IMG/VR virus record: IMGVR_UViG_3300010885_025649 | Coordinates: 148,498 to 212,497 of that record | Reading direction: 5' to 3' (one strand) | Length of the DNA: 64,000 nucleotides | Shown: positions 2,784-15,877 of the stretch, in pieces | Numbering within the stretch: position 1 is the first letter of the stretch | Layout: every line of letters begins with the position of its first letter | Position numbers and translations under genes: made by a program | Notes under the pieces: generated by a model | What the model saw: the letters and a program-made list of their open reading frames with translations, nothing else | Databases searched by the model: none | Told to the model about the DNA's origin: nothing

Positions 2784-2849
2784 GAAACTTCGGGTCGGTA
2801 CTAATAAAAGGGTCGGTAGACCCTAGGGAAACTAGGATAATCTACCGAC
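2784..2849 (-). promoter_or_regulatory. junction J1: terminator hairpin (CCTAG-GGAAA-CTAGG family) plus motif, second variant motif
   Basis: GTCGGTAGA..TCTACCGAC immediately after RNAP stop. Confidence 0.7.
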
Positions 2850-2859
2850 GCGTTAAGTG

Positions 2860-5667
2860 TTAGTCAATGCCTAGGTCAACCACACGGTTATATTCTGCTA
2901 CAACTTGTTTCTCCACCCCAAGGGTCAGAGCCACAAAGTAGAAGAAGCCTAGGTGTTTGATGCTACCTTCTCCTTGTTTAACCTTATCTGCTGTAAGAGC
3001 AGTAAAGTACAGGAGTTGGTCCTCAGAGAAGCCAAGAGTGTAAGCTTGAAGCTTATGCTCAATAGCAACCATGAGCGCACCATAGTTAGCCCCTTGAGAC
3101 ACTTGATCAAGGAGGATACGGTAGTCCACCTCAATAGCCTTATAGGCAACCCGAACATCTTCATACTCATCAGTGGGCAGAGCTTGACCCATGATCTCCC
3201 AGCGAGAGAGGTTAGAGGTCAAGGTATCCACATCAAGTACAGGATGCTCAGTCAAGTTGGTGAGGGTTGACCACACGTAGTCTGCTACGTGACCATAGCC
3301 TAGAGAACGAATCTCCGCCAAGTGGGGAGACAATTTCTCATAGGTGGTAGCTTCTGCCACAGCCAAAGCCCGTGCTTTGGTAGCAGTAAAGCCTTGATCA
3401 CGCAGCTCATTAACCCGATCTACCAGCCCATGATCTTTCCACACTTCCTTAAGGTGGGAAATAGCACTAAGGATTGGGCTGATATCTTTGTAGGGCATTT
3501 CACCCACGCCACCCAAAGCTTTCCACAACTTAGTAGCTTCAAGACGAAAGGCATGTAAGCTCAAAGAGCTATCAACCGTCTTCTTCATGCTGTTGAGGAC
3601 CGCTTGGATGTAACGAGCGAACTTGAACCTGATAGATGGCACCGCGCCTTCAGCACCGCTATCATCACCTTTGGTAAAGGCGGCAATCAGACCTGCACTA
3701 TGGTACAGGAACATCAAGGCCTTACCGAGGTTAACAGCGACGCCCACTTTAGCATCCCCTTCTTTGACCACCATAGCCATGACGTTCTTCCACGTAGAGT
3801 CTCCACTATTGGAGTGCTCAGTCTTCGTGGTAAGCGAACCATGGTTGCTGATGCGGGTATCATTTAGGGTAAGGAACTCAGGTAAGATCCCCCCTTCACA
3901 ATCCCCGTCAAAGTCACCTTGAATTTGCCCTTGAGTATAGGGAGTCATCAAGAACGCTGTTTGCTCGCCATGATCAATGACCTTTAAGGCCACCCAGCTA
4001 AAGTCAAACAACGCGGGTGCGCGATGGAAGATCATCACAGAACCCAGGGGGTATTTCCCTTTCAGTTCTGCTGGAACAATTACTTCATCATCTTTAATCC
4101 CGGTGTGGGGTAGGATGGGAAGATTGTATCCAGGCAAGCGATGAGTCAACATACGCTTCTTGAAGGCGTTAGTGAACTCGCTTGTGACATCTTCAAGGAT
4201 GGACTTGGCCAGCGGAAGACCAGCAGCTTGCATACGTAAGGCTAAACCTTGCGTACCAAACTGAGAACCGGCCTCATGCTCTTTGGCCAACGTGAGGAAC
4301 TTGCCCTCATCCCAGAGCTTAGCCATCGCTTGCACCTCTGCAAGAGAGGATACATGGTAGGCAGCTTTTAACTCAGGGTGGGCAAGAGTATCCATGAAGC
4401 GCAGATCTACCCCAAAGTTCAGAAGAGTCTGACGGGGATTAATCCACACGTTCATGATCAACAGTTCCTCAGGTTTGAGGGTGAGCTGATCCCCGTGCTT
4501 GGGCAAAGCGGCACCTTTTGCGCATTGGGTGAAAGCCTCCACAATAAAGCACAAAGAAGCCTCAGGATTGATCTCACGCGCCGCTGCTACCAAGCGTTTC
4601 TGCTTGTGATCAGTAGGCTTATTGATCATACCTTTGGCATTCAACATGCCGTGGTTAAGGAGAGCCGTACCTTGAGCAGGCGTGCAGGTATGCCCCACAG
4701 CCTCAAAGATTTGCTCATCATCAACCACTAACGCAAAGGGGCCATCCATGCTGACCTTGTATTTAATGCCAAGCTCTTTCGCGCTGACAAATACAATGTT
4801 AGCCAGGGAATGAAACAGGGGCGCACCAGGACGAAGGAGCGTTCTAGCCAGTTTATTAGCTAGGGCTGCATCCTCAGTCTGCTGAGGTTTATCTGTCCAC
4901 ACATAGGTCCCAGATGCACCTTTAACCCCTAACAGGTATGGGTGATTAGGGAACGCTGCATGAGCATGCTCAGCAACAGGAGCCATGAAATGCTCTTTGC
5001 CTACATAGGCTTGAGTCAGTTCCGCGCTTTCGATCTGGTACGTTGAAATAGGCTTGTTGGCCCGCACCGCTTCTGCCTCAGCCTTCTTAACGGCCTCATG
5101 ATCTTTGAGGACACTAGCTTTATAATCAAACATGTCAGCGCCCGTAGGACGACCAACTTGTTGAGTAATCAAGCCATTCTCAAACACCATAGGTTTGTAC
5201 CATCCGGCCGCAAATGGGTCAGAGGTTTTAACCTTAGGCAACGGTTTCTGTGGCTGATTGAACGCACCCTTGGTAAAGCTGATGCTATCTTTCCGCGTTA
5301 CTTCAGAAGCATGTGCTTCTTTTTCACACGGGAATTTCACATCAGCATAAGCCCGAGGGAAGGGGCGCTCTTGCTGAGTCCATGCGCGCACTACGCCGTT
5401 GTGGAGCTTCTTAACGCTAACAATCTTATCCAGATTACCATCAGCTTCGATCTTATACAAGATCTTAGCGACAGAGCTGAATGCAGACTGCGGCATTTTG
5501 AAGCCGTCAATAAAGAGGATAGGGTTACCCCGATCATCCCGGACGATTTCCACAAGGTGCGACGAGATAGCCTTCTTGTAGAAGAAGTCAATCACGTAGC
5601 TGCGTACAATCTCATCGGTCTCGGAGACCAATTGAATGCGCGCTTTGACGTTCATGGTTTTAGCCAT
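2860..5667 (-). CDS. single-chain two-barrel RNA polymerase (YonO/cellular-RdRP-like)
   Basis: ILPHTGIKDDEVIVP...VMIFHRAPAL...QGDFDGD (DFDGD at 3901-3915); upstream SMDG...PAQG...NAKG fits the second barrel. Confidence 0.85.
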   Translation of the reverse strand: MAKTMNVKARIQLVSETDEIVRSYVIDFFYKKAISSHLVEIVRDDRGNPILFIDGFKMPQSAFSSVAKILYKIEADGNLDKIVSVKKLHNGVVRAWTQQERPFPRAYADVKFPCEKEAHASEVTRKDSISFTKGAFNQPQKPLPKVKTSDPFAAGWYKPMVFENGLITQQVGRPTGADMFDYKASVLKDHEAVKKAEAEAVRANKPISTYQIESAELTQAYVGKEHFMAPVAEHAHAAFPNHPYLLGVKGASGTYVWTDKPQQTEDAALANKLARTLLRPGAPLFHSLANIVFVSAKELGIKYKVSMDGPFALVVDDEQIFEAVGHTCTPAQGTALLNHGMLNAKGMINKPTDHKQKRLVAAAREINPEASLCFIVEAFTQCAKGAALPKHGDQLTLKPEELLIMNVWINPRQTLLNFGVDLRFMDTLAHPELKAAYHVSSLAEVQAMAKLWDEGKFLTLAKEHEAGSQFGTQGLALRMQAAGLPLAKSILEDVTSEFTNAFKKRMLTHRLPGYNLPILPHTGIKDDEVIVPAELKGKYPLGSVMIFHRAPALFDFSWVALKVIDHGEQTAFLMTPYTQGQIQGDFDGDCEGGILPEFLTLNDTRISNHGSLTTKTEHSNSGDSTWKNVMAMVVKEGDAKVGVAVNLGKALMFLYHSAGLIAAFTKGDDSGAEGAVPSIRFKFARYIQAVLNSMKKTVDSSLSLHAFRLEATKLWKALGGVGEMPYKDISPILSAISHLKEVWKDHGLVDRVNELRDQGFTATKARALAVAEATTYEKLSPHLAEIRSLGYGHVADYVWSTLTNLTEHPVLDVDTLTSNLSRWEIMGQALPTDEYEDVRVAYKAIEVDYRILLDQVSQGANYGALMVAIEHKLQAYTLGFSEDQLLYFTALTADKVKQGEGSIKHLGFFYFVALTLGVEKQVVAEYNRVVDLGID

Positions 5668-5705
5668 GAGTTGGTATTCTCCTTACTAGTGATAGCTTAG
5701 TTGAG

Positions 5706-6281
5706 TTACGCAGCCAATTTGACTGCAAACGCAACAAGGCTAGCAAAGGTGTCTTTGGTGACAACCTTTTTAGCTGCAGGCTCCTTCACTTTAGTAGCAG
5801 AAGCTACCGCAGTAAAGAGTGGCACGGCCACCATTTTGATTTGGCGAGCCGCCCAAGCAGCCGCAGATGCAGCTACTTGTTTGCGTGCCACGCTGGCCGC
5901 TACTTGAGCGCGACGGACTTGCGCCCGCGCAGTCAATACCGCCTGAGCCTTGCGGCACAGTTTGGTGAGCTTATTAACCAACTTGGCTACGGTAGCACCC
6001 AGCAAGCGCTGTTGCGCCCACTGGTACATACCTTTAGTAGCCAGGGCTTTAAGCCCCTTGTTAGCCCGGGCCAACACGGCTTTCACCGCATTGGTTGGTA
6101 GGCTCGCCACGTTACCGTGGAAAGCCCCTTGTTCCGCAACTGCAAGGGCAGCACGAAAAGTAACCGATTTGGCCAGAGTGGCCTTAATGCTGGCCGCTTT
6201 AGCGACCTTTAAAGCCGTAGCTGCAGAGCAGCCACGGAAAGCCACCATATAGGCGGCTAAGTTGTTAACTGTGTTTGACAT
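5706..6281 (-). CDS. Ala/Lys-rich basic protein, possibly nucleic-acid binding
   Basis: 191 aa, very few acidic residues; AAGGAG RBS; directly upstream of RNAP gene. Confidence 0.65.
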   Translation of the reverse strand: MSNTVNNLAAYMVAFRGCSAATALKVAKAASIKATLAKSVTFRAALAVAEQGAFHGNVASLPTNAVKAVLARANKGLKALATKGMYQWAQQRLLGATVAKLVNKLTKLCRKAQAVLTARAQVRRAQVAASVARKQVAASAAAWAARQIKMVAVPLFTAVASATKVKEPAAKKVVTKDTFASLVAFAVKLAA

Positions 6282-6342
6282 GGTTTATTCGCTCCTTTAA
6301 AGTAACGGGTTACCACAACCCACACGCCCAGAAGGAGGGGTG

Positions 6343-6356
6343 CAAATAAAAAGTCG
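6343..6356 (-). promoter_or_regulatory. junction J2: motif without hairpin
   Basis: CGACTTTTTATTTG upstream of the basic protein/RNAP pair. Confidence 0.65.
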
Positions 6357-6388
6357 GTAACCAAAAGGAGCAACCACATACACAATAA

Positions 6389-6487
6389 CTATTGAAGCTT
6401 ATACTTGGGTCGTTCTAAGGGGCCGACCAAACCTCCACGGTCAACAGCAATCACCAAACCGAGCTCAACACTGCTAACAACAGTCAT
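6389..6487 (-). CDS. 32-aa small protein
   Basis: AAGGAGG then MTVVSSVELGLVIAVDRGGLVGPLERPKYKLQ*; translated by hand. Confidence 0.45.
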   Translation of the reverse strand: MTVVSSVELGLVIAVDRGGLVGPLERPKYKLQ

Positions 6488-6547
6488 GTCTAATCCTCCT
6501 TCAAGAATAGGCAGAGAGAAGGCTCCCTGCCTACAAGTTAAAGGAGT

Positions 6548-6844
6548 TTATTTGGCAACAAATTCCCTGCAACCTCTATCTACACTGTGCGGATTAACCG
6601 CACACGACAACGCGGAGCTAAAGCTGTAATACTTACAGCCATAACAAGGCCTTAAAGCCTTTACAATCTCCCAGTCTTCCTCCGAACAGTAGCCTGAGGC
6701 TAGAAAGAAACTAACCTCCTGCTCCGCATACTCAGCTTGACGCTCTTCCTCTTGAGCACAGAGAAGGGCAAGGGCATCAGCCATAATCTCCCCTTGAGAT
6801 TGATCTTTGATTCCCTGTGCTTCAGCGTGTGTGTAGTAACCCAT
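6548..6844 (-). CDS. protein with C-terminal CxxC..CAVNP..C domain (DUF6464-like)
   Basis: CYGCKYYSFSSALSCAVNPHSVDRGCREF. Confidence 0.65.
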   Translation of the reverse strand: MGYYTHAEAQGIKDQSQGEIMADALALLCAQEEERQAEYAEQEVSFFLASGYCSEEDWEIVKALRPCYGCKYYSFSSALSCAVNPHSVDRGCREFVAK

Positions 6845-6877
6845 GGTGCATCTCCATTACGCCACAAATCGAGGTGG

Positions 6878-6948
6878 CTAAATAAAGAGTCGGTATATAC
6901 AGAAAGAAAGTCGTTAACTCCTAGGGAAACTAGGATAAGTTAACGACT
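6878..6948 (-). promoter_or_regulatory. junction J3: hairpin plus tandem motifs
   Basis: AGTCGTTAACT-CCTAGGGAAACTAGG-ATA-AGTTAACGACT. Confidence 0.75.
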
Positions 6949-6955
6949 AGATTAA

Positions 6956-7261
6956 TTAAGCGGTGTAATAGTCAACTACAACCAAATTGCCTTTCAAGAA
7001 GGCAACAAGATCATAGTACTCGCCTTTATTAACATAAATCAAAACCTTCTTAGCCCCAAGAGCCAAGAAAGCTTGAAGCATTTCGCATGCGGTTGCATGT
7101 GAGAGGTTTTTGAACTTGGTGCGATTAGCACCAGTGTTGTAATCTTGCTTAGCCGCACGGAAGCGATTATGCTTGAGGACTAGCACTTGGCGATCCTCCA
7201 CCTCTGAAAACGAGATGCAAAAGGTCAACGCTGGGGTGATAACATTATGTTCTTGTAACAT
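6956..7261 (-). CDS. hypothetical protein
   Basis: ATG at 7261 after GGAGAG; the longer ORF-track start runs through the leader repeat. Confidence 0.65.
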   Translation of the reverse strand: MLQEHNVITPALTFCISFSEVEDRQVLVLKHNRFRAAKQDYNTGANRTKFKNLSHATACEMLQAFLALGAKKVLIYVNKGEYYDLVAFLKGNLVVVDYYTA

Positions 7262-7300
7262 GTGTCTCTCCAATAAGCCGCCTTTAAAAGAGGGCGAACT

Positions 7301-7329
7301 CAAATAAAGAGTCGGGGTTTCCCCCGACT
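7301..7329 (-). promoter_or_regulatory. junction J4: short hairpin plus motif
   Basis: CAAATAAAG-AGTCGGGG-TTTC-CCCCGACT. Confidence 0.75.
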
Positions 7330-7336
7330 TGTTTAT

Positions 7337-7504
7337 TTAGATCTTACCATTCTTAAGAATGGCCTCCTCCCATTCTTGCATAGCCATCCCGAAGACGATC
7401 TCCTGATCATCTTCAGGCGCAGCAGCGGCTGCTGCATATGCTTTGCACACTAGCATAAATAACAACCACTGCTGAGCAGTGGGAGTTACACAATAAACTC
7501 TCAT
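7337..7504 (-). CDS. 55-aa small protein
   Basis: GGAGAG then MRVYCVTPTAQQWLLFMLVCK...NGKI*; translated by hand. Confidence 0.6.
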   Translation of the reverse strand: MRVYCVTPTAQQWLLFMLVCKAYAAAAAAPEDDQEIVFGMAMQEWEEAILKNGKI

Positions 7505-7541
7505 GTTCTCTCCAATAAGCCACCTTTAAAAGAGGGTAGCT

Positions 7542-7555
7542 CAAATAAAGAGTCG
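7542..7555 (-). promoter_or_regulatory. junction J5: motif without hairpin
   Basis: CGACTCTTTATTTG. Confidence 0.65.
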
Positions 7556-7597
7556 CGTTATCACACACAATAATTATGGAACTCTATACTTGGGTCG

Positions 7598-7675
7598 TTA
7601 TAGGTAGGCAACAGCCACACCAACGCTAGCGTTAACCAAACTAAACATGTAACAACTAATCAAAAGCCTGCTCAT
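7598..7675 (-). CDS. 25-aa hydrophobic peptide
   Basis: GGAGG then MSRLLISCYMFSLVNASVGVAVAYL*. Confidence 0.4.
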   Translation of the reverse strand: MSRLLISCYMFSLVNASVGVAVAYL

Positions 7676-7728
7676 GATTAACCCTCCAAAGTAAGTGGGA
7701 GGAAGGCCCCCCACTTTAGACAGGTTAA

Positions 7729-7872
7729 TTATTTCTTAGCTGCGGCAGCTTCTTCATCACGCTCATCTTGAAGCCATTGCTCCCAGTAAGCATCCATCTG
7801 GAGCTTATGAATCCACAGATTCCAAGCCAGTGTGTGGTTCACCAACTTGACAATCATCTTCACTTTAGTCAT
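7729..7872 (-). CDS. 47-aa small protein
   Basis: GGAGAG then MTKVKMIVKLVNHTLAWNLW...AAAAKK*. Confidence 0.6.
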   Translation of the reverse strand: MTKVKMIVKLVNHTLAWNLWIHKLQMDAYWEQWLQDERDEEAAAAKK

Positions 7873-7910
7873 GGTACTCTCCAATGACTCACCTTTAAAA
7901 GAGGGCAAGT

Positions 7911-7940
7911 CAAAGAAAAGGTCGGGATTTCTCCCAACCT
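7911..7940 (-). promoter_or_regulatory. junction J6
   Basis: CAAAGAAA-AGGTCGGGA-TTTC-TCCCAACCT. Confidence 0.7.
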
Positions 7941-7949
7941 TTTAATCAA

Positions 7950-8372
7950 TTAAACAGTGTAATCACGGCACAAAGTGCCAAACCCTAGGGGGTTTACAGT
8001 ACACGGAAGCCGCCACTCCCCGGTGGCGTATTTACACGCCTCACAGGGATTAGGTTCCTGTTCCGCACACCAACGGTTGTAAGCTTCTACCGCATCTGGC
8101 TCAAGCTGTTCATCTTGAGCAAGGTGGTAGGCCTCCCGGCGCTCTTGCTCCGTCAGCTCCCGCGGGTCTAACCATGCGTCATAAGCGGGAGAGTTCTCCC
8201 AAAGACACATAGCGATTTCTTCCCGAATCGCCCGTTGGCGATCAGTGAGCAGACGAGTTGGAACTCCGACCCAAGGATCTTGCAGCACAGACTGCTTAGC
8301 AGCCCAGCGCTCAAAATCCCAGTGGTTTTGGTTGACCAAAACGATCTTGGTAGCCTGAGTAACTTTAAACAT
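7950..8372 (-). CDS. protein with C-terminal CxxC..CTVNP..C domain (DUF6464-like)
   Basis: CEACKYATGEWRLPCTVNPLGFGTLCRDYTV; start MFKVT after AAGGAG. Confidence 0.7.
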   Translation of the reverse strand: MFKVTQATKIVLVNQNHWDFERWAAKQSVLQDPWVGVPTRLLTDRQRAIREEIAMCLWENSPAYDAWLDPRELTEQERREAYHLAQDEQLEPDAVEAYNRWCAEQEPNPCEACKYATGEWRLPCTVNPLGFGTLCRDYTV

Positions 8373-8396
8373 TTGCGCTCCTTTAATAGTGGAGGA

Positions 8397-8472
8397 CAAA
8401 TAAAGAGTCGATAATACTTATCCTAGAAAAGAAGTCGGCAATCCCTAGAGAAACTAGGATAGATTGCCAACT
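8397..8472 (-). promoter_or_regulatory. junction J7: hairpin plus tandem motifs
   Basis: AGTCGGCAATC-CCTAGAGAAACTAGG-ATA-GATTGCCAACT. Confidence 0.75.
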
Positions 8473-8476
8473 CAAA

Positions 8477-8989
8477 TTACCACTTCATGGTAGCCTTAGA
8501 CCAGCCATCCGGAGCTGCATCTAATACTTCCATCAGATCTCCCGCCAGGTGGTAGCTAGCAGGAGAGGGCTTTCCAGAAGGCAAGGTCAGCTTCTGAGGC
8601 TCTTCAGCCTCGAAGTCAACCTGAAGAAATAAACGCACCATTGCATCTATTCCTATAGCTTTGGAAAGCCGAAAGGGAGGTAAGTTGCCCCGGTACGAAA
8701 CCGGCGATAGCGTCACGTCAACGCCAATCACACGATTCTCATACTGAAAGACCACATCAGCACCGTATACCCAATCCAGAATGGACCGGGCAGAACAGGT
8801 GTTGATAGGTCTCCCAATGATCCCCTCCAAGCTTTTCAGCTTACGAACACCTAAGAACCGCTGAGCGGTAGCTAGAAGTTCGACTTCGCTTGGACGAGGC
8901 CATGAGGCAAAGGTAGAGGGATGCAGCTCAATCAAACGAATGAACTGCAACTCAACTACCTTAGGATCGTAATACCCATCTTGGGACAT
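8477..8989 (-). CDS. hypothetical protein, possible PD-(D/E)XK nuclease fold
   Basis: LDWVYGADVVFQYENRVIGVDVT; start MSQDG after GAGG. Confidence 0.5.
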   Translation of the reverse strand: MSQDGYYDPKVVELQFIRLIELHPSTFASWPRPSEVELLATAQRFLGVRKLKSLEGIIGRPINTCSARSILDWVYGADVVFQYENRVIGVDVTLSPVSYRGNLPPFRLSKAIGIDAMVRLFLQVDFEAEEPQKLTLPSGKPSPASYHLAGDLMEVLDAAPDGWSKATMKW

Positions 8990-9067
8990 ACGAGTTCCTC
9001 TTGTATTGTGCCAACTCTTGGACGACCACACCAAGAGTAAGAACTACTGACACAGGATTGTAGGACT

Positions 9068-9116
9068 CAGAAAGAAAGTCGCTAACTTCTAGGGAAACTA
9101 GAATAGGTTAGCGACT
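9068..9116 (-). promoter_or_regulatory. junction J8
   Basis: AGTCGCTAAC-TTCTAGGGAAACTAGAA-TAG-GTTAGCGACT; compensatory change in the inner stem. Confidence 0.75.
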
Positions 9117-9122
9117 AATTAA

Positions 9123-9377: not shown

Positions 9378-9401
9378 TTGCACTCCTTTAATAGTGGAGA
9401 A

Positions 9402-9455: not shown

Positions 9456-9461
9456 CATTAA

Positions 9462-10034: not shown

Positions 10035-10097
10035 GGCTTTTTAAACTCCCTTTAGAGTACAGGTAACCACACCTGGAGTCCACAAAAGGGATGAACT

Positions 10098-10144
10098 CAG
10101 AAAAGAAGTCGTAGCTAGCCCCATCATGGCGTTCAGCTACGACT
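10098..10144 (-). promoter_or_regulatory. junction J10
   Basis: CAGAAAAGA-AGTCGTAGCT..AGCTACGACT. Confidence 0.7.
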
Positions 10145-10234
10145 ATCTTAGATATACTCTCTCCTATGCGGTTATTGCAGTAGTACGAGAGCTTCTGTTC
10201 CCAGGCTTATTCAGCCCGATGTATAGAGAAACTC

Positions 10235-10429
10235 TTAGCGGATGTAGATCCGTTTCTGAGTTTTCTCTACTGTGCAAGTTGCGCTATTAAACGCAGGATC
10301 GCACAGGGTATACAACAGTTGATATTCTTGGCGAACATCTTTGTACTGTGTATTACCTACATACACACTATATCCTTGGTACATGACCAAGTGGATAAGT
10401 GTGCTTAGAGAGATTAGTAATGGGTGCAT
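10235..10429 (-). CDS. hypothetical protein
   Basis: 64 aa, GGAG upstream, long structured leader. Confidence 0.55.
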   Translation of the reverse strand: MHPLLISLSTLIHLVMYQGYSVYVGNTQYKDVRQEYQLLYTLCDPAFNSATCTVEKTQKRIYIR

Positions 10430-10545
10430 TACTAACTCCGTAAGTCCCTCCGAGTAACGTCCTTAGGGGTCTACGTATCCGCTATTAATTCTCTTCGACA
10501 AGAGAACCACAGGTTAAACCCGGAGTTGACGGATAAAGTGCAACT

Positions 10546-10594
10546 CAAATAAAGAGTCGGAACTTCCTAGGGAAACTAGGATAAAGCTCCGACT
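10546..10594 (-). promoter_or_regulatory. junction J11
   Basis: AGTCGGAACTT-CCTAGGGAAACTAGG-ATA-AAGCTCCGACT. Confidence 0.75.
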
Positions 10595-10601
10595 ATATCA
10601 C

Positions 10602-11057
10602 TTAAACTGTGTAGTCACGACACCCCTGCCCAAAGGCCAGGGGATTTACGCCACAAGGGAGGAGAGCCTCCCCTGTGGCGTATACACAGCCCTTGCAAAG
10701 GTTTTCCGACTCCGGATATGCCGGTGGCGGACTATATAATTGGTATGCCGGGTGAAGGGCAATATTGCCCTCAAATACCGGTGGCAGATCTTGCCACCGG
10801 TCCTCCCACACCCATACCGTTATGTGACATGCCCAGAAGGGCAGTAACGGTATGGCACCGTCTGCATCCTGCACAGGCAGGATGACCATATAATTATTAA
10901 ATTGCGGATCCTGATAGTGGATCCGAACGCGGGGAGTTTCCCTCGCCTCAATCTTAGCCGTGCTAAGATTAAGGTTGGCTTGGGCTTTCGCCCGTTTTGC
11001 TGCATACGCAGCGTATCCGGGAAACGTAGCCAATGTAGCCAGGTTGGTACGTGCCAT
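10602..11057 (-). CDS. protein with C-terminal CxxC..CGVNP..C domain (DUF6464-like)
   Basis: CKGCVYATGEALLPCGVNPLAFGQGCRDYTV; start MARTN after GGAGAG. Confidence 0.7.
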   Translation of the reverse strand: MARTNLATLATFPGYAAYAAKRAKAQANLNLSTAKIEARETPRVRIHYQDPQFNNYMVILPVQDADGAIPLLPFWACHITVWVWEDRWQDLPPVFEGNIALHPAYQLYSPPPAYPESENLCKGCVYATGEALLPCGVNPLAFGQGCRDYTV

Positions 11058-11095
11058 GTGTCTCTCCAATAAGCCGCCTTTAAAAGAGGGCAGCT

Positions 11096-11171
11096 CAAAT
11101 AAAGAGTCGATAATACTTATCCTAGAAAAGAAGTCGGAACTTCCTAGGGAAACTAGGATAAAGCTCCGACT
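11096..11171 (-). promoter_or_regulatory. junction J12: hairpin plus tandem motifs
   Basis: hairpin identical to J11, spacer identical to J7 and J13. Confidence 0.75.
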
Positions 11172-11174
11172 TAG

Positions 11175-11813
11175 TTATGCTTTACGAGCAGCACGAAGGC
11201 GCGCCACTAAATCTTTAGGCACTTGACGACAAGGACCAGACAAGATACCTATCAAGGTATCATACTCTCGCTTTGAAAACGCGTCCATCCCAGCGATTAG
11301 CCAGGACTCTCCATCGGGACGTTCAACCCTCCAACCGGTGTTAACCGGCACTGGGGACCAAGTCCACCAGCTACCATGAGGTAAGGTAGACTTATGCAGC
11401 AAGGCATAAATCTTGTTACCCCGCTCTAAGTAAAGCGTGTTTCCACTAATTTCTAGCCTCAAACTAAACCTGACCAAGATCTTGATCACCGTGGCAAGGT
11501 GCCACTTATATACGTAAAGCTTAACATTGTAGCGGTTAATCTCCGGTGGCTCAACGGGAGCCAACATTACTGCGGCTACCCAAAGGAGGCAGCGCACCGC
11601 TGCTGGAGGGCAACTTACACCCTCCGCATAGTACGAGCCAGGGGCTAGACACCCCGGAATTTGTGATACCTGTAGGAGAGCGGTATAGCCCTCCTTGGGA
11701 ATGAGTAGAATAACTCGACCCATGGTTGTGGGCACGACGGCCCTCACATTAAAGTCAAACATCCCGGTCAGGATGGACGAAACTTTTTCTTCGGTCACGT
11801 TTACTTTAAACAT
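11175..11813 (-). CDS. hypothetical protein, paralogue of 9462..10034
   Basis: 212 aa, ends LRAARKA. Confidence 0.65.
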   Translation of the reverse strand: MFKVNVTEEKVSSILTGMFDFNVRAVVPTTMGRVILLIPKEGYTALLQVSQIPGCLAPGSYYAEGVSCPPAAVRCLLWVAAVMLAPVEPPEINRYNVKLYVYKWHLATVIKILVRFSLRLEISGNTLYLERGNKIYALLHKSTLPHGSWWTWSPVPVNTGWRVERPDGESWLIAGMDAFSKREYDTLIGILSGPCRQVPKDLVARLRAARKA

Positions 11814-11854
11814 CTTGATGTCTCCAATAAGCCGCCTTTAAAAGAGGGCGAACT

Positions 11855-11920
11855 CAAATAAAGAGTCGATAATACTTATCCTAGAAAAACTGTCGAATGT
11901 AGTGCTAGTACATCCGACAG
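11855..11920 (-). promoter_or_regulatory. junction J13: hairpin plus tandem motifs
   Basis: CTGTCGAATGTA..TACATCCGACAG. Confidence 0.7.
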
Positions 11921-11976
11921 CTTGGTGGTCAGTTATTTAGATTGTCTATCCTCGCAGACCTACGAGGGTTAATTGG

Positions 11977-12420
11977 TTACGGGCTATCCGCGCATAAATC
12001 TTCAATGATGCTTAATACATCATCAAAGTCCTGTGCAGGAAATACAACCCCTAACGAAGTGATGACAGCCCAATTAAAGCCATCATGTTCGTAGAAGCCG
12101 TACACACCCAACTTAAATGTGCCGATAACGACATCTAAGCTAAGTGGTTCCACCACAGGAGGTGCCACAGAATAACCCATAAGTACCTGTCCCCAGATGC
12201 CCAGGTCCGTGGCATAACCCTGAATAGCAGGATTAAGCCCATCGCCATAGGCCCAGTGCAGATGCAGGTCTTCAATAACCTCATGAACGGTAATACGAGT
12301 ACCATCCTTGAAGGCCTTGAATCCCCACACCTCACCTTGTGGGTTATAGATTTGCTCAACAGTAATGTTAAGCTCCTCTACAACCCCAACTGGTGGCAGG
12401 AAGAAATGGAGTTTATCCAT
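11977..12420 (-). CDS. hypothetical protein
   Basis: start MDKLH after AAAGGAG. Confidence 0.65.
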   Translation of the reverse strand: MDKLHFFLPPVGVVEELNITVEQIYNPQGEVWGFKAFKDGTRITVHEVIEDLHLHWAYGDGLNPAIQGYATDLGIWGQVLMGYSVAPPVVEPLSLDVVIGTFKLGVYGFYEHDGFNWAVITSLGVVFPAQDFDDVLSIIEDLCADSP

Positions 12421-12484
12421 GTTCTCCTTTCTCCCGCGTGCAGATAACCAGCTAGTTATCCTACGTCTTATGGAGTTCAATCAA

Positions 12485-12558
12485 CAAATAAAGAGTCGAT
12501 AATAATTAATCTAGAAAAGAAGTCGCTAACCCCTAGAGACTAGGATAAGTTAGCGACT
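12485..12558 (-). promoter_or_regulatory. junction J14: hairpin plus tandem motifs
   Basis: AGTCGCTAACC-CCTAGAGACTAGG-ATA-AGTTAGCGACT. Confidence 0.75.
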
Positions 12559-12564
12559 TAACTT

Positions 12565-12639
12565 TTAGAAGCTAAAGTACGCGATGATCATCGCTATAAT
12601 AGCGATGAACAAAGAACCTTCAGCAATCTTCTTCAACAC
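12565..12639 (-). CDS. 24-aa single-TM peptide
   Basis: TAAGGAGGTGA then MLKKIAEGSLFIAIIAMIIAYFSF*, occupying its own cassette. Confidence 0.6.
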   Translation of the reverse strand: MLKKIAEGSLFIAIIAMIIAYFSF

Positions 12640-12664
12640 AGAAATCACCTCCTTAGGTGTGTAC

Positions 12665-12696
12665 CTAAAGAAGAGGTCGGGGTATTCCCCCGACCT
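12665..12696 (-). promoter_or_regulatory. junction J15
   Basis: AGGTCGGGG-TATTC-CCCCGACCT. Confidence 0.7.
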
Positions 12697-12700
12697 ACTA

Positions 12701-13249
12701 TTAATCTTTACTAAACGTTAAGACACCTCCAGTATCAAGGTAGATACGAAGGATTTCCCAATCGCTTTTATACGATAGGTGTGGAAGGAGTTTTTGAAGA
12801 TCTCCTTTCATACCCATACGTATAAGCAAATCTGGGGTTTGGAGCCACGAACTCCAGTTGAGTTGGTTTGTGCAGTGACTAAACCAATCATTATCTAAAT
12901 TGCCCGTACGAGCAAGTTGACTGATTTGGGAATCAGTCAAGGTGTAAAACTTCTTATCCCGCGCTTTAAGCGGGACAATGAGTTTCCCGGGTAGAGCATT
13001 AGGCCCCACCTGTGCAGCAACTCTCTGCTGTACCCGGATCTCCCCTAAAGGAGTGCCCACGATTCCCCACCAAAGATGGAACAAATCATGAACAGAAGGT
13101 ACTGCTGCCCCCTGTTCAATGTACCACTGACAAAGGGAACCCCCCCCTTGTAGTCTAAATAACTTTATGGGACATTGTTGCTCCGCGTCATCAACGCGGA
13201 TAAACAATAGCGAGCCCATCCGGTGACCACTCTTCTTAGATAATCCCAT
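12701..13249 (-). CDS. hypothetical protein
   Basis: 182 aa ORF, GGAGAGG upstream. Confidence 0.65.
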   Translation of the reverse strand: MGLSKKSGHRMGSLLFIRVDDAEQQCPIKLFRLQGGGSLCQWYIEQGAAVPSVHDLFHLWWGIVGTPLGEIRVQQRVAAQVGPNALPGKLIVPLKARDKKFYTLTDSQISQLARTGNLDNDWFSHCTNQLNWSSWLQTPDLLIRMGMKGDLQKLLPHLSYKSDWEILRIYLDTGGVLTFSKD

Positions 13250-13294
13250 GATCCTCTCCCTGGAGTACCTCTACGAAATTGTAGAGCAGTAGTC

Positions 13295-13333
13295 CAAGAA
13301 AAAGAGTCGGAGGTTGCTAGCCTCCAACTCTTT
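13295..13333 (-). promoter_or_regulatory. junction J16
   Basis: AAAGAGTCGGAGG..CCTCCAACTCTTT. Confidence 0.7.
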
Positions 13334-13339
13334 ATTTAC

Positions 13340-13744
13340 TTATTGCGGTGGGAATTCAAAGAACTCCACGATGGTAGTCAACGGGAGGTGCACCCATTTA
13401 GAGTAATGCACCTCCGTTAACATAACATTTGACGCATAGGGCAGGGTGCCCTCAGTCATGGAGAGTGTAATATGAGGGTGCGTGTTATCGCACACCTCCT
13501 GGATCTCCTCAGGAAGGAGAACTGACAGGGCTTGCACCCTATCATCGTGGTGTGACAGCATAGCTGTCACAATAAGCTGCTGACCAAGCAGGTGTTGATA
13601 GCCGACGCTATCAACCCCGAACTTGAGCGTGCAATGGAAGTGTTTAGCTTCCACTGGAAACTCGAAGTTCACAGCAGCTTTGACTGCTGCGATGGCCTCA
13701 GCAGTCAAAGAAAGCCAAAGAATTCCCTTTGCCATGTCATTCAC
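13340..13744 (-). CDS. 2H phosphoesterase
   Basis: two HxT motifs: FHCTLKF and PHITLS, followed by G..P.ASN.ML; start may be ATG at 13735. Confidence 0.75.
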   Translation of the reverse strand: MNDMAKGILWLSLTAEAIAAVKAAVNFEFPVEAKHFHCTLKFGVDSVGYQHLLGQQLIVTAMLSHHDDRVQALSVLLPEEIQEVCDNTHPHITLSMTEGTLPYASNVMLTEVHYSKWVHLPLTTIVEFFEFPPQ

Positions 13745-13766
13745 CTGGGGTGTGAAAGATTTGCCC

Positions 13767-13814
13767 CAGAAAAGAAGTCGGTAATCCCTAGAGAAACTAG
13801 GATAGATTACCGAC
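13767..13814 (-). promoter_or_regulatory. junction J17
   Basis: GTCGGTAATC-CCTAGAGAAACTAGG-ATA-GATTACCGAC. Confidence 0.75.
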
Positions 13815-13820
13815 AGCTAG

Positions 13821-14168
13821 CTACAGGTAGACCCTGCAGTTAGTCAGGAGTATAGGATACTCCTCTCTTAACCAATCTCGATCCTCCTCTAAAAGAGGGA
13901 CAGGATCCTCATTATCAATACGATAATGAGTGGCACGATTGCACACCTCATCACCGTTCATTATATCTTCAACAATGTAACCATCTAAGGTTACAAACTC
14001 ACTGTTAAACATGGAGCAAAGCTCCTGTGTAATATAGCTCTTACTCCTAAAAGGAGTAATGGGGCCTAAGTCCCCATTGTTAATTTGATCTCTCTCGACT
14101 GTATCCCGGGTAACTTTACCCACAGCCAGTAAACAAAACTCATAGGCCTCAGCAGTAAACTTGATCAT
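13821..14168 (-). CDS. hypothetical protein
   Basis: 115 aa, AAGGAGG RBS. Confidence 0.7.
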   Translation of the reverse strand: MIKFTAEAYEFCLLAVGKVTRDTVERDQINNGDLGPITPFRSKSYITQELCSMFNSEFVTLDGYIVEDIMNGDEVCNRATHYRIDNEDPVPLLEEDRDWLREEYPILLTNCRVYL

Positions 14169-14223
14169 GGTGAACCTCCTTGACAGAGAGGGGAACCACC
14201 CCGAGATCTTTAATAGAGGATCT

Positions 14224-14273
14224 CAGAAAAAGAGTCGAAGACTATAAGAGGAGGCTCTTACAATCTTCGACTC
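14224..14273 (-). promoter_or_regulatory. junction J18
   Basis: GAGTCGAAGA..TAAGAG-GAGG-CTCTTA..TCTTCGACTC. Confidence 0.7.
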
Positions 14274-14276
14274 CAG

Positions 14277-14615
14277 TTAGGCATCATAAACAAGGGTATT
14301 ACCCCCAGCTTTCTGAAAGCCTAAACTTAAGAAGGCCAAGCTCCGATGCTCAGCCAAGCCATCCCCCTCATAAGGAATGGCCATTACTTCAACCCCAGCC
14401 AAGGGGCCAGCGGTCCATTGGCTGAAGGTACGACAAAGCCATCGTACAATCCGGACTTTCGTCCTAACTTCAGCACTAACAATAGTATAACTATTATTAA
14501 TGCTAAAGCTAATAGACCCCGAGCTTGCAGTCCCACGGAACTCAAGCTCAACGGCAACCCCATCAATTAGGGTTACCGCTTTGATAATGTCTAGTTCCAT
14601 ATTAGAAACTATCAC
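14277..14615 (-). CDS. hypothetical protein, paralogue of 14914..15306
   Basis: AIPYEGDGLAEHRSLAFLSLGF; start uncertain, no SD seen. Confidence 0.6.
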   Translation of the reverse strand: MIVSNMELDIIKAVTLIDGVAVELEFRGTASSGSISFSINNSYTIVSAEVRTKVRIVRWLCRTFSQWTAGPLAGVEVMAIPYEGDGLAEHRSLAFLSLGFQKAGGNTLVYDA

Positions 14616-14617
14616 AA

Positions 14618-14647
14618 CAGAAAAAGAGTCGAGGCAGTTGCCCCGAC
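14618..14647 (-). promoter_or_regulatory. junction J19
   Basis: CAGAAAAAGA-GTCGAGGC-AGTT-GCCCCGAC. Confidence 0.7.
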
Positions 14648-14691
14648 ATCTTAGTTAGAATTTCTTACCCGCGCTAACTACGCGGACACCC

Positions 14692-14847
14692 CTAAAGTCC
14701 AGCCCCAAGCTGGTCTAGGGTGATGAACCCTAGCCTCCAAGCTTGAAGCCAACAGTTGGAAGGGGTGCACTCCTCAACTGTTGTGAACATCTTCACTACC
14801 AACTGGCGCTCAGCATCAGTCAGTAACAAAGCTAACTGTGGGCACAT
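14692..14847 (-). CDS. 51-aa small protein
   Basis: TAAGGAGGTGA then MCPQLALLLTDAERQ...GAGL*. Confidence 0.6.
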   Translation of the reverse strand: MCPQLALLLTDAERQLVVKMFTTVEECTPSNCWLQAWRLGFITLDQLGAGL

Positions 14848-14876
14848 AAAGAATCACCTCCTTAAGGTTATGCTCA

Positions 14877-14915
14877 CAGAAAAGAAGTCGAAGGGAAGGC
14901 CCTCCAACTTCTTTT
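14877..14915 (-). promoter_or_regulatory. junction J20
   Basis: AAGAAGTCGAAGGG-AAGG-CCCTCCAACTTCTT. Confidence 0.7.
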
Positions 14916-15306
14916 AGGTGATAAGAAAATAACTATCACCATACTCGGCAAAGCCGAGTGAATCAAGAAATTTGCAGCGGACACTGTGATGGCCATCACC
15001 ATCACAGGGAAACGCGCAAACAATGGTGTTTGCGGGGAGACCCGCGATGTGTGCTTTTACAGCACGGTACGCGGTACGGACCGCGCTTGTTGGGACGACG
15101 CTGTGGTTAGCAGCATTGTAACCAACGGAGCCATTAACATCTGCATCGAGGACGATGCAGCTGACGTAATCATCACCGAAGAAGTCTTCGGTGACGAAGA
15201 AGTTGACGCTAAGCGCGCCAACGGTGATATCAGCATTGAAGCTGACATCAACAGGAGTATTAGATACTCCTGCTTTGAGATTAGTAAGTTGGCGAATGGT
15301 ATTCAT
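14914..15306 (-). CDS. hypothetical protein, paralogue of 14277..14615
   Basis: AFPCDGDGHHSVRCKFLDSLGF; AAGGAGG RBS. Confidence 0.65.
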   Translation of the reverse strand: MNTIRQLTNLKAGVSNTPVDVSFNADITVGALSVNFFVTEDFFGDDYVSCIVLDADVNGSVGYNAANHSVVPTSAVRTAYRAVKAHIAGLPANTIVCAFPCDGDGHHSVRCKFLDSLGFAEYGDSYFLIT

Positions 15307-15341
15307 TCCCCCCCTCCTTCTGTTACCCAGATTAGGTAACT

Positions 15342-15411
15342 CAAATAAAAAGTCGGAGGATACAGAAAGAAAGTCGTTAACTCCTAGGGAAACTAGGATA
15401 AGTTAACGACT
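15342..15411 (-). promoter_or_regulatory. junction J21: hairpin plus tandem motifs
   Basis: hairpin identical to J3. Confidence 0.75.
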
Positions 15412-15417
15412 AGTCAC

Positions 15418-15540
15418 TTAAGGGCAGCGATAAACGATGCAGATGGCTGCATCGAGAGTAGCCAAATACAGGGCTAATCCAACGTTGACAAGAATCGCGG
15501 CGAGGGCCGCGATTAAAATATCCAATGCGTATTTGCGCAT
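15418..15540 (-). CDS. 40-aa membrane peptide
   Basis: AAGGAG then MRKYALDILIAALAAILVNVGLALYLATLDAAICIVYRCP*. Confidence 0.6.
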   Translation of the reverse strand: MRKYALDILIAALAAILVNVGLALYLATLDAAICIVYRCP

Positions 15541-15571
15541 GGTGTCTCCTTGTTACCCAGATTAGGTAACT

Positions 15572-15627
15572 CAAATAAAAAGTCGGTATATACAGAAAAG
15601 AAGTCGGTAACCAAGGGGTTACCGACT
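15572..15627 (-). promoter_or_regulatory. junction J22: hairpin plus tandem motifs
   Basis: AGTCGGTAACC-AAGG-GGTTACCGACT. Confidence 0.75.
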
Positions 15628-15633
15628 ATGAGA

Positions 15634-15840
15634 TTAGAATCCAAGGGCGCTAAGGCCATCTTGGATTGTCTTGAGTCTAGTTGGGGTGGTACGATACCCC
15701 CCTGCTAGACAGACAAGATGAAAATATAAATCTGGGTTTTTTGTACAAAACGGATTTGCCGAGTATACGGTATCCACCGAAGGGGTGAACACGGAAACGG
15801 AAACGGAAACAATCAAAACAAAACGGATTAACTTTGACAT
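15634..15840 (-). CDS. small protein with possible signal peptide
   Basis: MSKLIRFVLIVSVSVSVFTP; TAAGGAG RBS; first gene of the array. Confidence 0.6.
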   Translation of the reverse strand: MSKLIRFVLIVSVSVSVFTPSVDTVYSANPFCTKNPDLYFHLVCLAGGYRTTPTRLKTIQDGLSALGF

Positions 15841-15863
15841 TTGAACTCCTTAATAGTGGAGGA

Positions 15864-15877
15864 CAAATAAAGAGTCG
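15864..15877 (-). promoter_or_regulatory. junction J23: first motif of the array, no hairpin
   Basis: CGACTCTTTATTTG with no upstream co-oriented gene. Confidence 0.7.

Follow-up and report, generated by a model that had tools for sequence, protein, structure and literature searches.

A CGAC-plus-pyrimidine signal at the gene boundaries of a phage early block is most likely stop/start punctuation for a phage-encoded non-standard RNA polymerase

How are transcripts stopped and started in a 13-kb block of small early genes in which every gene boundary carries the same short signal? The block lies on the minus strand of a 64-kb window (the whole stretch of DNA that was analyzed), which is part of the 155-212 kb genome of an uncultured freshwater tailed phage with a contractile tail (sheath and gp25). 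An earlier note, made from the sequence alone, described 23 junctions with about 31 copies of one 14-nt motif, CGAC followed by a pyrimidine tract and a G, and proposed that this motif is dual-coded, ending one transcript and starting the next to give monocistronic units. We find that the observation itself is real, while the interpretation is only partly supported, as the signal comprises two sequence classes rather than one and its start and stop activities are inferred from sequence alone.

To test whether the motif is specific to the block, we ran a pattern search allowing up to 1 mismatch, which found 29 matches against 2.33 expected (shuffle maximum 8), 27 of them on the minus strand between 6343 and 15877. 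A stricter regular expression identified 29 copies in the block, all co-oriented with the genes, and none on the other strand, in 16001-64000, in 1-2780 or in the 10 kb beyond the left end of the window. Together with the degenerate copies at 11895 and 2815 this gives the ~31 copies and 23 junctions of the earlier note, and in all we count 29 strict and 5 degenerate copies between 15877 and 2797. The 8 tandem junctions and the replacement of GTCG by GTTG in 5 hairpins were likewise confirmed.

The strict copies fall into two classes that had been missed. The T-type (CGACTTCTTTTCTG-like, 16 copies) is always in a hairpin, while the P-type (CGACTCTTTATTTG, 13 copies) lacks a hairpin in 11 copies and is invariant at 12 of 14 positions, with one further position nearly so, although its flanks are shuffled among two spacer and three leader modules. 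Where both classes occur the order is always T then P, 21 or 27 nt apart, and the 8 junctions with this arrangement look more like a terminator followed by a promoter than one dual signal. Only 2 P-type copies (10559 and 7314) and the 9 T-only junctions are candidates for true fusion. However, many junction copies are recent duplicates, with repeats of 34-84 nt at 88-100% identity, so the invariance of the P-type overstates independent selection.

We next asked whether the hairpins behave as terminators. Twenty copies form the 3' arm of a hairpin (dG -9.5 to -23 kcal/mol) that starts 22-124 nt after a stop codon. For the nine long hairpins, 126 of 126 cells are paired, 5 pairs change on both sides and 0 of 500 shuffles reach the observed covariation score. 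Across all 20 stems there are 225 Watson-Crick and 15 G-U pairs and no A-C mismatch, and the sense strand is the more stable in 16 of 20. Further, terminator-like sites number 46 against 13.6 expected, whereas sigma-70-like promoters are not enriched (12 against 15.2 expected). These data fit terminators tuned for the sense RNA. The claim that the conserved G opens a new leader hairpin is loose, as the first paired base lies -9 to +7 from it when the tract is included in the fold. The tract can also pair with the ribosome-binding site, which would also suit a transcribed 5' UTR element.

CGAC itself is constrained as sequence, as the earlier note had proposed. It is invariant in all copies, and all 34 sense-strand CGACs in the block lie at junctions. 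The 10.5 kb of coding sequence holds 1 CGAC against 21 GTCG, with 16.7 expected from synonymous shuffles, while the next 20 genes downstream hold 9 against 10 (Fisher p = 0.0025, rate test p = 0.0009), so that the word is essentially banned from coding sequence in this block only. However, all CGA-containing tetramers are depleted about 2.5-fold in these genes, so part of the CGAC deficit is generic.

Which polymerase could read such a signal? The earlier note did not identify one. We found that the last gene of the block encodes a 935-aa homologue of two-barrel (double-psi beta-barrel) single-subunit RNA polymerases, belonging to a very rare family. DxDGD is invariant in the family alignment, PDB sequence hits fall only on the catalytic barrel of RNA polymerase largest subunits, and hits in a viral library include RNA polymerases. 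The top Foldseek hit of the predicted structure is QDE-1 (E = 5e-6), although the model has low overall confidence (mean pLDDT 48.7, with the core at 60-90). A neighboring 3188-aa ORF carries a single DxDxD motif (GDYDGD) and is a candidate virion-delivered polymerase. This assignment remains unproven, as we detected no similarity to any polymerase beyond the six-residue motif, and its fold prediction was unsuccessful.

Conservation in distant relatives further supports the constraint on CGAC. In the relatives L005 and L006, whose polymerases are about 25% identical, only the polymerase is detectably homologous, yet both carry CGAC(T/C)(C/T)TT..CT(G/A)G signals, with or without hairpins, before and after their polymerase genes, and one hairpin is nearly identical to that at 9436 in the window. 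Their polymerase genes show the same trend in CGAC against GTCG (1 against 10 in L005, 3 against 8 in L006). Another lineage, represented by L004 and L016, uses a different conserved hairpin/T-run/AGTG signal with the same layout, and has a hairpin-less copy before the first early gene. Hairpin-less copies sit where only a start signal makes sense: before the first unit of the block (15877), where there is nothing to terminate, and upstream of the polymerase operon (6356), and likewise upstream of the polymerase genes of L006 and, in that lineage's own motif, of the first early gene of L016.

Table. Junctions and principal genes of the early block and its neighbor
Positions	Strand	Feature	Details
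15864..15877	-	Junction 1 (J23 of the earlier note)	P-type CGACTCTTTATTTG, no hairpin, 24 nt before the first early gene; upstream neighbor is a divergent plus-strand PAS gene; GC content shifts here
15572..15626	-	Junction 2	Hairpin 15603-15626 with T-type 15593-15606, then P-type 15572-15585 (21-nt offset)
15342..15410	-	Junction 3	Long hairpin with T-type 15363-15376, then P-type 15342-15355
14877..14908	-	Junction 4	T-only; GTTG...CGAC hairpin plus CGACTTCTTTTCTG; stem closely resembles the hairpin after the L006 polymerase gene
14618..14647	-	Junction 5	T-only; start codon 18 nt after the G, no Shine-Dalgarno sequence
14224..14271	-	Junction 6	T-only; 17-bp hairpin (dG -23)
13767..13814	-	Junction 7	T-only; long hairpin family
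13296..13328	-	Junction 8	T-only; position 14 is T and the next base is G; tract can pair 13 bp with the downstream ribosome-binding site
12666..12694	-	Junction 9	T-only variant CGACCTCTTCTTTA
12485..12557	-	Junction 10	Hairpin with T-type 12512-12525, then P-type 12485-12498 (27-nt offset)
11855..11918	-	Junction 11	Hairpin with degenerate T (CGACAGTTTTTCTA, 11882-11895), then P-type 11855-11868
11096..11170	-	Junction 12	Hairpin with T-type 11123-11136, then P-type 11096-11109
10546..10593	-	Junction 13	Truly fused; long hairpin whose 3' arm runs straight into a P-type motif
10098..10143	-	Junction 14	T-only
9402..9453	-	Junction 15	Hairpin with T-type 9423-9436, then P-type CGACTATTTATTTG 9402-9415
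9068..9115	-	Junction 16	T-only; long hairpin family
8397..8471	-	Junction 17	GTTG-type hairpin with T-type 8424-8437, then P-type 8397-8410
7911..7938	-	Junction 18	T-only variant CGACCTTTTCTTTG, followed by leader module 'a'
7542..7597	-	Junction 19	CGACCCAAGTATA element (from 7597), then hairpin-less P-type 7542-7555
7301..7328	-	Junction 20	Truly fused; short hairpin plus P-type
6879..6947	-	Junction 21	Hairpin with T-type 6900-6913, then P-type 6879-6892 (ends in A)
6343..6412	-	Junction 22	CGACCCAAGTATA element (from 6412), then hairpin-less P-type 6343-6356; only motif ahead of the two-gene unit that ends with the polymerase gene
2784..2849	-	Junction 23	Closing hairpin 2812-2849 with CGACCCTTTTATTA, then CGACCCGAAG (from 2797); last CGAC signal of the block
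5706..15840	-	24 small early genes	24-212 aa, almost all with no known family
2860..5667	-	Two-barrel RNA polymerase homologue	935 aa; last gene of the block
16832..26398	-	Candidate virion-delivered polymerase, unproven	3188-aa ORF; GDYDGD at residue ~2135

Given this pattern, we hypothesize that the signals are promoter cores of a phage-encoded, non-host RNA polymerase that overlap intrinsic-type terminators, a reading we hold with moderate confidence. In this view, the core word is CGAC followed by nine mostly pyrimidine bases and a purine, in which CGAC would be the specificity element, the T-rich stretch the melting region and the purine would lie at or next to +1. As CGAC in most junctions is also the last four base pairs of an RNA hairpin with the tract as its U-tail, the signal that ends the upstream transcript would overlap the one that can start the next. 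The near-invariant P-type (CGACTNTTTATTTG) would be the strong, hairpin-independent promoter that opens the block and drives the polymerase operon, while the T-type would be primarily a terminator that probably keeps weaker start activity; nine genes have nothing else in front of them. However, a T-type that already started transcripts would be redundant at the 8 tandem junctions. The polymerase that reads the signals is most likely already present at infection, with the 3188-aa protein as the candidate, and the 935-aa polymerase would then take over the downstream genes, which lack the motif. The anatomy, covariation, strand specificity, CGAC avoidance, conservation in relatives and polymerase fold come directly from our analyses, whereas start and stop activity, dual use of the T-type, the +1 position, monocistronic units and the question of which polymerase reads what rest on inference.

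The alternative that survives best, which we regard as possible but less likely, is a division of labor without dual coding. T-type units would be only terminators or attenuators and P-type units only promoters, sharing CGAC because the same polymerase recognizes that word both to start and, in a hairpin/U-tract context, to pause and release, with the nine T-only junctions as leaky stops inside operons. The strict order, the fixed offsets and the unequal distribution of hairpins support this view, and banning bare CGAC from long genes such as the 2.8-kb polymerase gene fits a stop or pause role better than a start role. Thermus phage P23-45 also has a sequence-specific stop motif for its virion polymerase. 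However, six consecutive T-only junctions (14890 to 12679) would put seven genes behind up to six strong hairpin/U-tract stops (dG -11 to -23). Further, T-like sequences in L006 and L005 occur without hairpins directly upstream of genes, including the polymerase gene, and in L016 and L004 a single fused signal is the rule, one of which even separates the two halves of a split polymerase gene.

It would seem unlikely that the signals act as RNA-level punctuation, in which the block is transcribed from one or a few promoters, the CGAC-tract sites are cleavage or stability signals for an endoribonuclease and the hairpins protect the 3' ends of the processed monocistronic RNAs. The sense-RNA tuning of the hairpins, the possible pairing of the tract (if transcribed) with the ribosome-binding site and a perfect TTGACA 20 nt upstream of the first motif agree with this reading, and strand-specific avoidance of a 4-mer in coding sequence is what a sequence-specific RNase would impose. 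However, a cleavage word would not need the nine-base tract and purine conserved at fixed length across phages, and one nuclease would have to handle CGAC both base-paired (20 of 34 copies) and single-stranded. The motif also stops exactly where the polymerase gene ends, which ties it to a transcription switch, and the downstream genes of the same phage tolerate CGAC. Least likely are ordinary host-polymerase promoters and intrinsic terminators packaged as repeated recombination cassettes like the PeSLs of T4-type phages, with the CGAC conservation coming from cassette copying: although the junctions are modular with reassorted spacers and leaders, the 34-84 nt repeats are 88-100% identical, the flanked genes have no known family and include paralogues and AT-rich hexamers such as TATTAT and TATATA lie just upstream of eight P-type copies, five P-type copies lack the hexamer, sigma-70-like sites are not enriched, and copying explains neither the same word in L005 and L006, where nothing but the polymerase is alignable, nor the CGAC ban.

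Composite terminator/promoter elements are already known from the PeSL cassettes (promoter-early stem-loops) of T4-type phages (PMC2839356, PMC4122927). As here, these are repeated between small genes of no known family in a myovirus, with a stem-loop that attenuates upstream transcription, a promoter for the next gene and modules that look reassorted. However, PeSLs are ~100 bp with a separate consensus sigma-70 promoter read by the host polymerase, whereas the elements described here are 14-75 nt and share a non-host word between the stem foot and the presumed promoter, a word that is excluded from coding sequence. A precedent for the proposed polymerases is P23-45, in which a giant virion protein carrying a two-barrel polymerase (gp96) reads its own conserved promoters in a block containing the gene for a second, non-virion two-barrel polymerase (gp64), stops at a conserved 26-nt motif, and is followed by a change of promoter class after that block (PMC10770324). 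We detected no sequence similarity to gp64 or gp96, and the P23-45 motifs differ in that an AT-rich promoter and a separate stop motif are used, while here start and stop share CGAC and overlap. In addition, the virion role of the giant ORF is unproven, and the phage described here has a contractile tail.

The layout also recalls T7-group promoters, in which an AT-rich stretch is followed by CGACT, an AT-rich melting stretch and G at +1 (T7 core CGACTCACTATAG, P-type CGACTCTTTATTTG), and T7 RNA polymerase also stops at a hairpin plus U-run. However, we found no T7-type polymerase motif in the giant ORF or in any ORF longer than about 200 aa in the window, the polymerase found here is of the two-barrel kind, and the P-type is one base longer with an optional upstream AT-rich part. 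Finally, phage N4 (PMC4496689) likewise has a giant (~3200-3500 aa) protein next to an early block containing genes for a second polymerase, and hairpins associated with its early signals. N4 virion RNA polymerase promoters need a DNA hairpin of 5-7 bp with a 3-nt loop, whereas the stems here are 7-17 bp with 4-7 nt loops, most P-type copies have no hairpin, and the G-U pattern points to RNA hairpins.

The window is phage DNA, encoding a Mu-type portal, a tail sheath and a gp25-like baseplate protein, and it is identical to parts of two public viral contigs of 155,514 and 212,497 bp from freshwater metagenomes, except that it differs from all three public copies at four bases inside the polymerase gene, which changes three residues. 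Elsewhere the copies are identical apart from two further single-base differences in one of them, L002 (2950, 2772). Searches of annotated phages for near-identical DNA and protein returned no match, and Pfam and PHROG scans of the early proteins found essentially nothing. The G+C content falls sharply from 0.46-0.50 between position 1 and about 15,900 to 0.33-0.38 beyond (16000-64000), and the step lies exactly at the first motif. The early and polymerase block and the virion gene block look like modules of different origin. The G+C content of the related contigs L005 and L006 (0.52) and of the relative L004 (0.41) also differs. The motif-bearing block lies entirely in the high-GC part on the minus strand and begins next to a divergent plus-strand PAS-domain gene, which lies between the giant ORF and the early block. 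The features discussed here are collected in the table.

Positions of the features discussed (window coordinates unless another sequence is named)
Feature	Position	Strand	Detail
First P-type motif	15877	-	stands alone before the first early gene
P-type ahead of the polymerase unit	6356	-	only signal ahead of the two-gene unit
Fused hairpin/P-type junctions	10559; 7314	-	hairpin runs straight into the P-type
Degenerate motif copies	11895; 2815	-
CGACCC(A/G)AAG element overlapping an ORF	6412	-	tail of a doubtful 32-codon ORF
Noncoding element matching that at 6412	7597	-
Two-barrel polymerase gene	2860-5667		935 aa, last gene of the block
Four-base difference from the public copies	5262-5274		inside the polymerase gene
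Giant ORF	16832-26398	-	3188 aa, GDYDGD at residue ~2135
Giant ORF of the relative L016	L016 1-6683		3170 aa, GDLDGD at residue ~2230
Split polymerase of L016	L016 10001-12493		450-aa and 350-aa ORFs
Distant polymerase homologue	L014 8468-11872; L015 1922-5326		623 aa
Genes after the polymerase gene	1-2800; L001 12809-20295	- (window)	long leaders, no CGAC motif
38-nt stretch shared with L006	1860-1897
Noncoding repeat-rich stretch	L001 20296-21841		1.5 kb
Strong hairpins without CGAC or a U-tract	7675-7729; 6487-6548	-	before ORFs of 25 and 32 codons
Tracts complementary to a ribosome-binding site (examples)	13296-13309; 12666-12679
Putative 2H phosphoesterase	13340-13735	-	HCTL and HITL motifs
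PAS-domain gene	15938-16807	+
Pyrophosphatase-like/DUF6321 gene	30333-31775	+	among the head genes
Mu-type portal	27417-28919
Tail sheath	39351-42923
gp25-like baseplate protein	56480-57544

The pattern described in the earlier note is present in the sequence. A pattern search allowing one mismatch gave 29 hits against 2.33 expected (maximum of 8 in shuffled sequences), of which 27 are true copies on the minus strand between 6343 and 15877. A stricter expression found 29 copies in the block and none on the other strand, in the remaining 48 kb or in the 10 kb beyond the left end of the window. Together with two degenerate copies these reproduce the 31 copies in 23 junctions counted in the note, as well as its 20 hairpin-borne copies, 8 tandem junctions and 5 GTTG arms. 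We placed 25 genes with Shine-Dalgarno sites and found that each hairpin follows a stop codon and that each last motif lies 18-117 nt before the next start codon.

The 20 hairpins carry two sequence features of intrinsic (factor-independent) terminators. They are stable (dG -9.5 to -23) and lie 22-124 nt after stop codons, and the nine bases that follow CGAC are mostly U, interrupted by C or A. A generic scan for terminator-like sites found 46 against 13.6 expected. The nine long hairpins share a conserved tip and a variable, fully compensated lower stem in which all 126 cells pair, five pairs change on both sides, and no shuffle in 500 reaches the observed covariation. Over all 20 stems there are 225 Watson-Crick and 15 G-U pairs with no A-C mismatch, and the sense strand folds better in 16 of 20, so the hairpins are made for the sense RNA. 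No Rfam family matched. As scans for more relatives returned only the same phage or nothing, orthologue-based covariation was impossible, and the comparative evidence rests on four sequences, L004, L005, L006 and L016.

What the earlier note took for one 14-nt motif is in fact two classes. The T-type (16 copies; CGACT(T/C)(C/T)(T/C)TT(T/C)CT(G/A)) is always the foot of a hairpin, while the P-type (13 copies; CGACT(C/T/A)TTTATTT(G/A)) is invariant at 12 of 14 positions and nearly so at a 13th, and has no hairpin in 11 copies. In all eight tandem junctions the order is T then P, at 21 or 27 nt, and nine junctions are T-only. Two junctions, in which a hairpin runs straight into a P-type, are truly fused. 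Around the constant P core, two spacer modules and three leader modules are combined in different ways. Two strong hairpins without CGAC or a U-tract precede tiny hydrophobic ORFs, and each is followed by a conserved CGACCCAAGTATA...TTATTGTGT element and then a hairpin-less P-type. Paralogue families also occur among the early genes (g12, g17 and g22; g3 and g5; g11 and g14), with three proteins sharing a ~30-aa Cys-rich C-terminal module (up to 70% identity) and several genes sharing the start MFKV together with their leader module. Another early protein, with two H-x-T/S motifs, gave weak hits to 2H phosphoesterases, including the anti-CBASS protein Acb1 and an RNA-ligase PHROG, and may be a counter-defence enzyme.

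We also found that CGAC is a reserved word, which the note had missed. All 34 sense-strand CGACs between 15877 and 2797 sit at junctions, comprising 29 motifs, two degenerate motifs and three CGACCC(A/G)AAG elements, only one of which overlaps an ORF. The 25 early genes (10,545 nt of coding sequence) hold 1 CGAC against 21 GTCG, whereas the 20 genes just downstream, from the same phage and of similar G+C (6,183 nt), hold 9 against 10. The polymerase genes of L005 (2,862 nt) and L006 (2,868 nt) hold 1 against 10 and 3 against 8, respectively. Synonymous-codon shuffles predict 16.7 CGAC in the early genes, and although all CGA-containing tetramers are depleted there to about 0.4-fold, CGAC is at 0.06-fold. 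The contrast between early and downstream genes gives Fisher p = 0.0025 and a rate test p = 0.0009. A strand-specific ban confined to the motif-bearing block means that whatever reads CGAC acts on this block, and acts on one strand.

The last gene of the block, whose product was likewise not identified in the note, encodes a protein with a QGDFDGD motif. Its only PDB sequence hits, though weak (E = 0.04-0.55), all align to the catalytic double-psi beta-barrel of RNA polymerase largest subunits. A word-indexed protein search with this protein found only itself, and an exhaustive HMMER scan of 1.8 billion representative proteins found only seven distant homologues, in which the residues of DxDGD (D585, D587, G588 and D589) are invariant. 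An AlphaFold model has a confident core (pLDDT 60-90) but is poor overall (mean pLDDT 48.7). Its top Foldseek match is the two-barrel polymerase QDE-1 (7y7r_B; E = 5e-6, probability 1.0, 564 columns), followed by cyanobacterial and plant polymerase subunits, and viral-library hits include viral RNA polymerases. The catalytic motif and the predicted fold thus place the protein with the two-barrel (DPBB) single-subunit RNA polymerases such as QDE-1, YonO, crAss-like gp66 and P23-45 gp64/gp96. In L016 the polymerase is split into two ORFs separated by one of that phage's own junction elements. A distant homologue, in the sequences L014 and L015, lies directly after a reverse-transcriptase gene in what looks like a bacterial chromosome (GatB, MnmE and RNase E/G are nearby) and may be part of a defence-type gene pair.

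The adjacent giant ORF contains exactly one DxDxD motif, at about two-thirds of its length. In L016 a giant ORF in the same gene neighbourhood has a single GDLDGD at a similar relative position; both giants have a weak PLD-like Pfam hit, and both lie next to an early block that contains a two-barrel polymerase gene. However, profile comparison, PDB search and pairwise BLAST to the L016 giant gave nothing beyond the motif, a word-indexed protein search with the window's giant ORF found only itself, and its single-sequence structure prediction was unusable (pLDDT 36). No T7/N4-type polymerase motif was found in it. Its role as a virion polymerase is a hypothesis.

Between the window and L005 and L006 only the polymerase genes align at the protein level, yet both relatives carry the motif. 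L006 has hairpin-borne CGACTCTTTTACTGG and CGACTCTTTCTCTAGG, a hairpin-less CGACCTTTTTTCTAGG about 60 nt before its polymerase gene and, after that gene, a hairpin almost identical to the one at window 9436, ending in CGACTCTTTTACTAGG. L005 has the motif before and after its polymerase gene and hairpin-less copies further on. L004 and L016 use another conserved signal, a hairpin ending in CCTCCTATTTTTTAGTG, which lies around the polymerase gene and in L016 even between the two halves of the split polymerase gene. Further downstream, L004 and L016 switch to a second signal, GCGCTACCGCGC followed by a T-run and GGA. A hairpin-less version precedes the first early gene of L016. The design of hairpin foot, T-tract and purine at every early gene boundary is therefore a family trait, and the words co-vary with the polymerase lineage.

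We next asked what might read these signals. Sigma-70-like sites are not enriched (12 against 15.2 expected), none is recurrent at the junctions and their spacing is inconsistent, so a host sigma-70 reading was rejected. A Bacteroidota-type -7 element was also considered, as TTTATTTG resembles TAnnTTTG, but was set aside because the genes use strong Shine-Dalgarno sites. The motif stops exactly at the end of the polymerase gene. The genes beyond it have long (50-325 nt), G+C-rich, structured leaders with no CGAC motif and no hairpin/U-tract, and a search for a second shared motif in these intergenic regions yielded only weak candidates. Three elements of this region are shared with L006, namely a 38-nt stretch, YTAACAGCC and a tRNA T-arm-like GGTTCGACTCC, although ARAGORN called no tRNA.

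We therefore read CGAC-tract-purine as a phage-polymerase promoter core that overlaps intrinsic-type terminators, in which the P-type would be the strong start signal and the T-type mainly a stop signal with probable residual start activity. The CGAC ban inside genes argues that the word also matters during elongation, as a pause or release signal, and this is the best support for genuine dual use. The closest worked example is Thermus phage P23-45, in which a virion two-barrel polymerase reads its own promoters, transcribes the gene for a second polymerase and stops at a conserved motif (PMC10770324). The layout of the junctions, their covariation and strand specificity, the avoidance of CGAC, the recurrence of the design in relatives and the polymerase fold (from a model) come from the analysis itself, whereas initiation and termination at these sites, the position of +1 and the assignment of a polymerase to each signal are inferred without any RNA ends. 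Several observations argue against this reading. The T-then-P tandems look like separate stop and start signals, and many copies are recent duplicates. Leader helices do not begin sharply at the purine, although the note had held that the conserved G often opens a leader hairpin. The pyrimidine tract can also pair with the ribosome-binding site of the next gene, by up to 13 bp, such that read-through transcripts would mask that site while transcripts started at the purine would not, but this may simply reflect base composition. The note's interpretation of dual-coded stop/start signals is thus only partly supported.

Of the alternatives, a division of labour, with the T-type and P-type as separate stop and start signals, survives best, and RNA processing is less likely. 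Host-read cassettes like the PeSLs of T4-type phages, which are composite terminator/promoter elements carrying host sigma-70 promoters (PMC2839356, PMC4122927), are the least likely as sigma-70-like sites are not enriched here, although within this one genome, with no pair of related genomes to show exchange, the spacer and leader modules are reassorted around an invariant core and repeats are 88-100% identical.

Among other known systems, N4 hairpin promoters, which require a short DNA hairpin (5-7 bp stem, 3-nt loop) upstream of +1, do not fit because 11 of 13 P-type copies have no hairpin and the stems here are 7-17 bp with loops of 4-7 nt. The P-type resembles the T7 promoter core in layout, but no T7-type polymerase motif B pattern was found in the giant ORF or in any window ORF over about 200 aa, a search that covers only 64 kb of the 155-212 kb genome, of which a further 10 kb of flank was seen. 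Phage-polymerase punctuation is already known, and what would be new here is the form that it takes in an almost unsampled polymerase family.

A more far-reaching possibility, which we consider unlikely though the evidence does not rule it out, is a previously undescribed phage transcription system in which CGAC on the sense strand is read by a virion-delivered giant two-barrel polymerase both to start and to stop. The same protein-nucleic acid contact would nucleate initiation at CGAC-tract-purine and, when CGAC is met during elongation at the foot of a nascent hairpin, would trigger release. This would explain why the word is reserved for gene boundaries and purged from every early gene, and sister lineages would have evolved other dialects of the same grammar along with their polymerases.

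If our main reading is correct, this is a compact, polymerase-specific stop/start code from a nearly unsampled family of single-subunit two-barrel RNA polymerases. It would show how a phage can run an early programme independent of the host polymerase using 14-nt signals, and it offers a clean natural case for asking whether promoter recognition and termination can share one contact. The system could supply orthogonal promoter, terminator and polymerase parts for synthetic biology, and the reserved-word statistic is a simple sequence-only way to detect such private transcription grammars in metagenomic phages.

Finally, two further features lie outside the motif-bearing block. A protein with inorganic pyrophosphatase-like and DUF6321 domains is encoded among the head genes, and about 7.5 kb downstream of the polymerase gene, in the sequence L001, there is a noncoding, AT-rich stretch full of direct and inverted repeats that may be a replication origin or a genome end.
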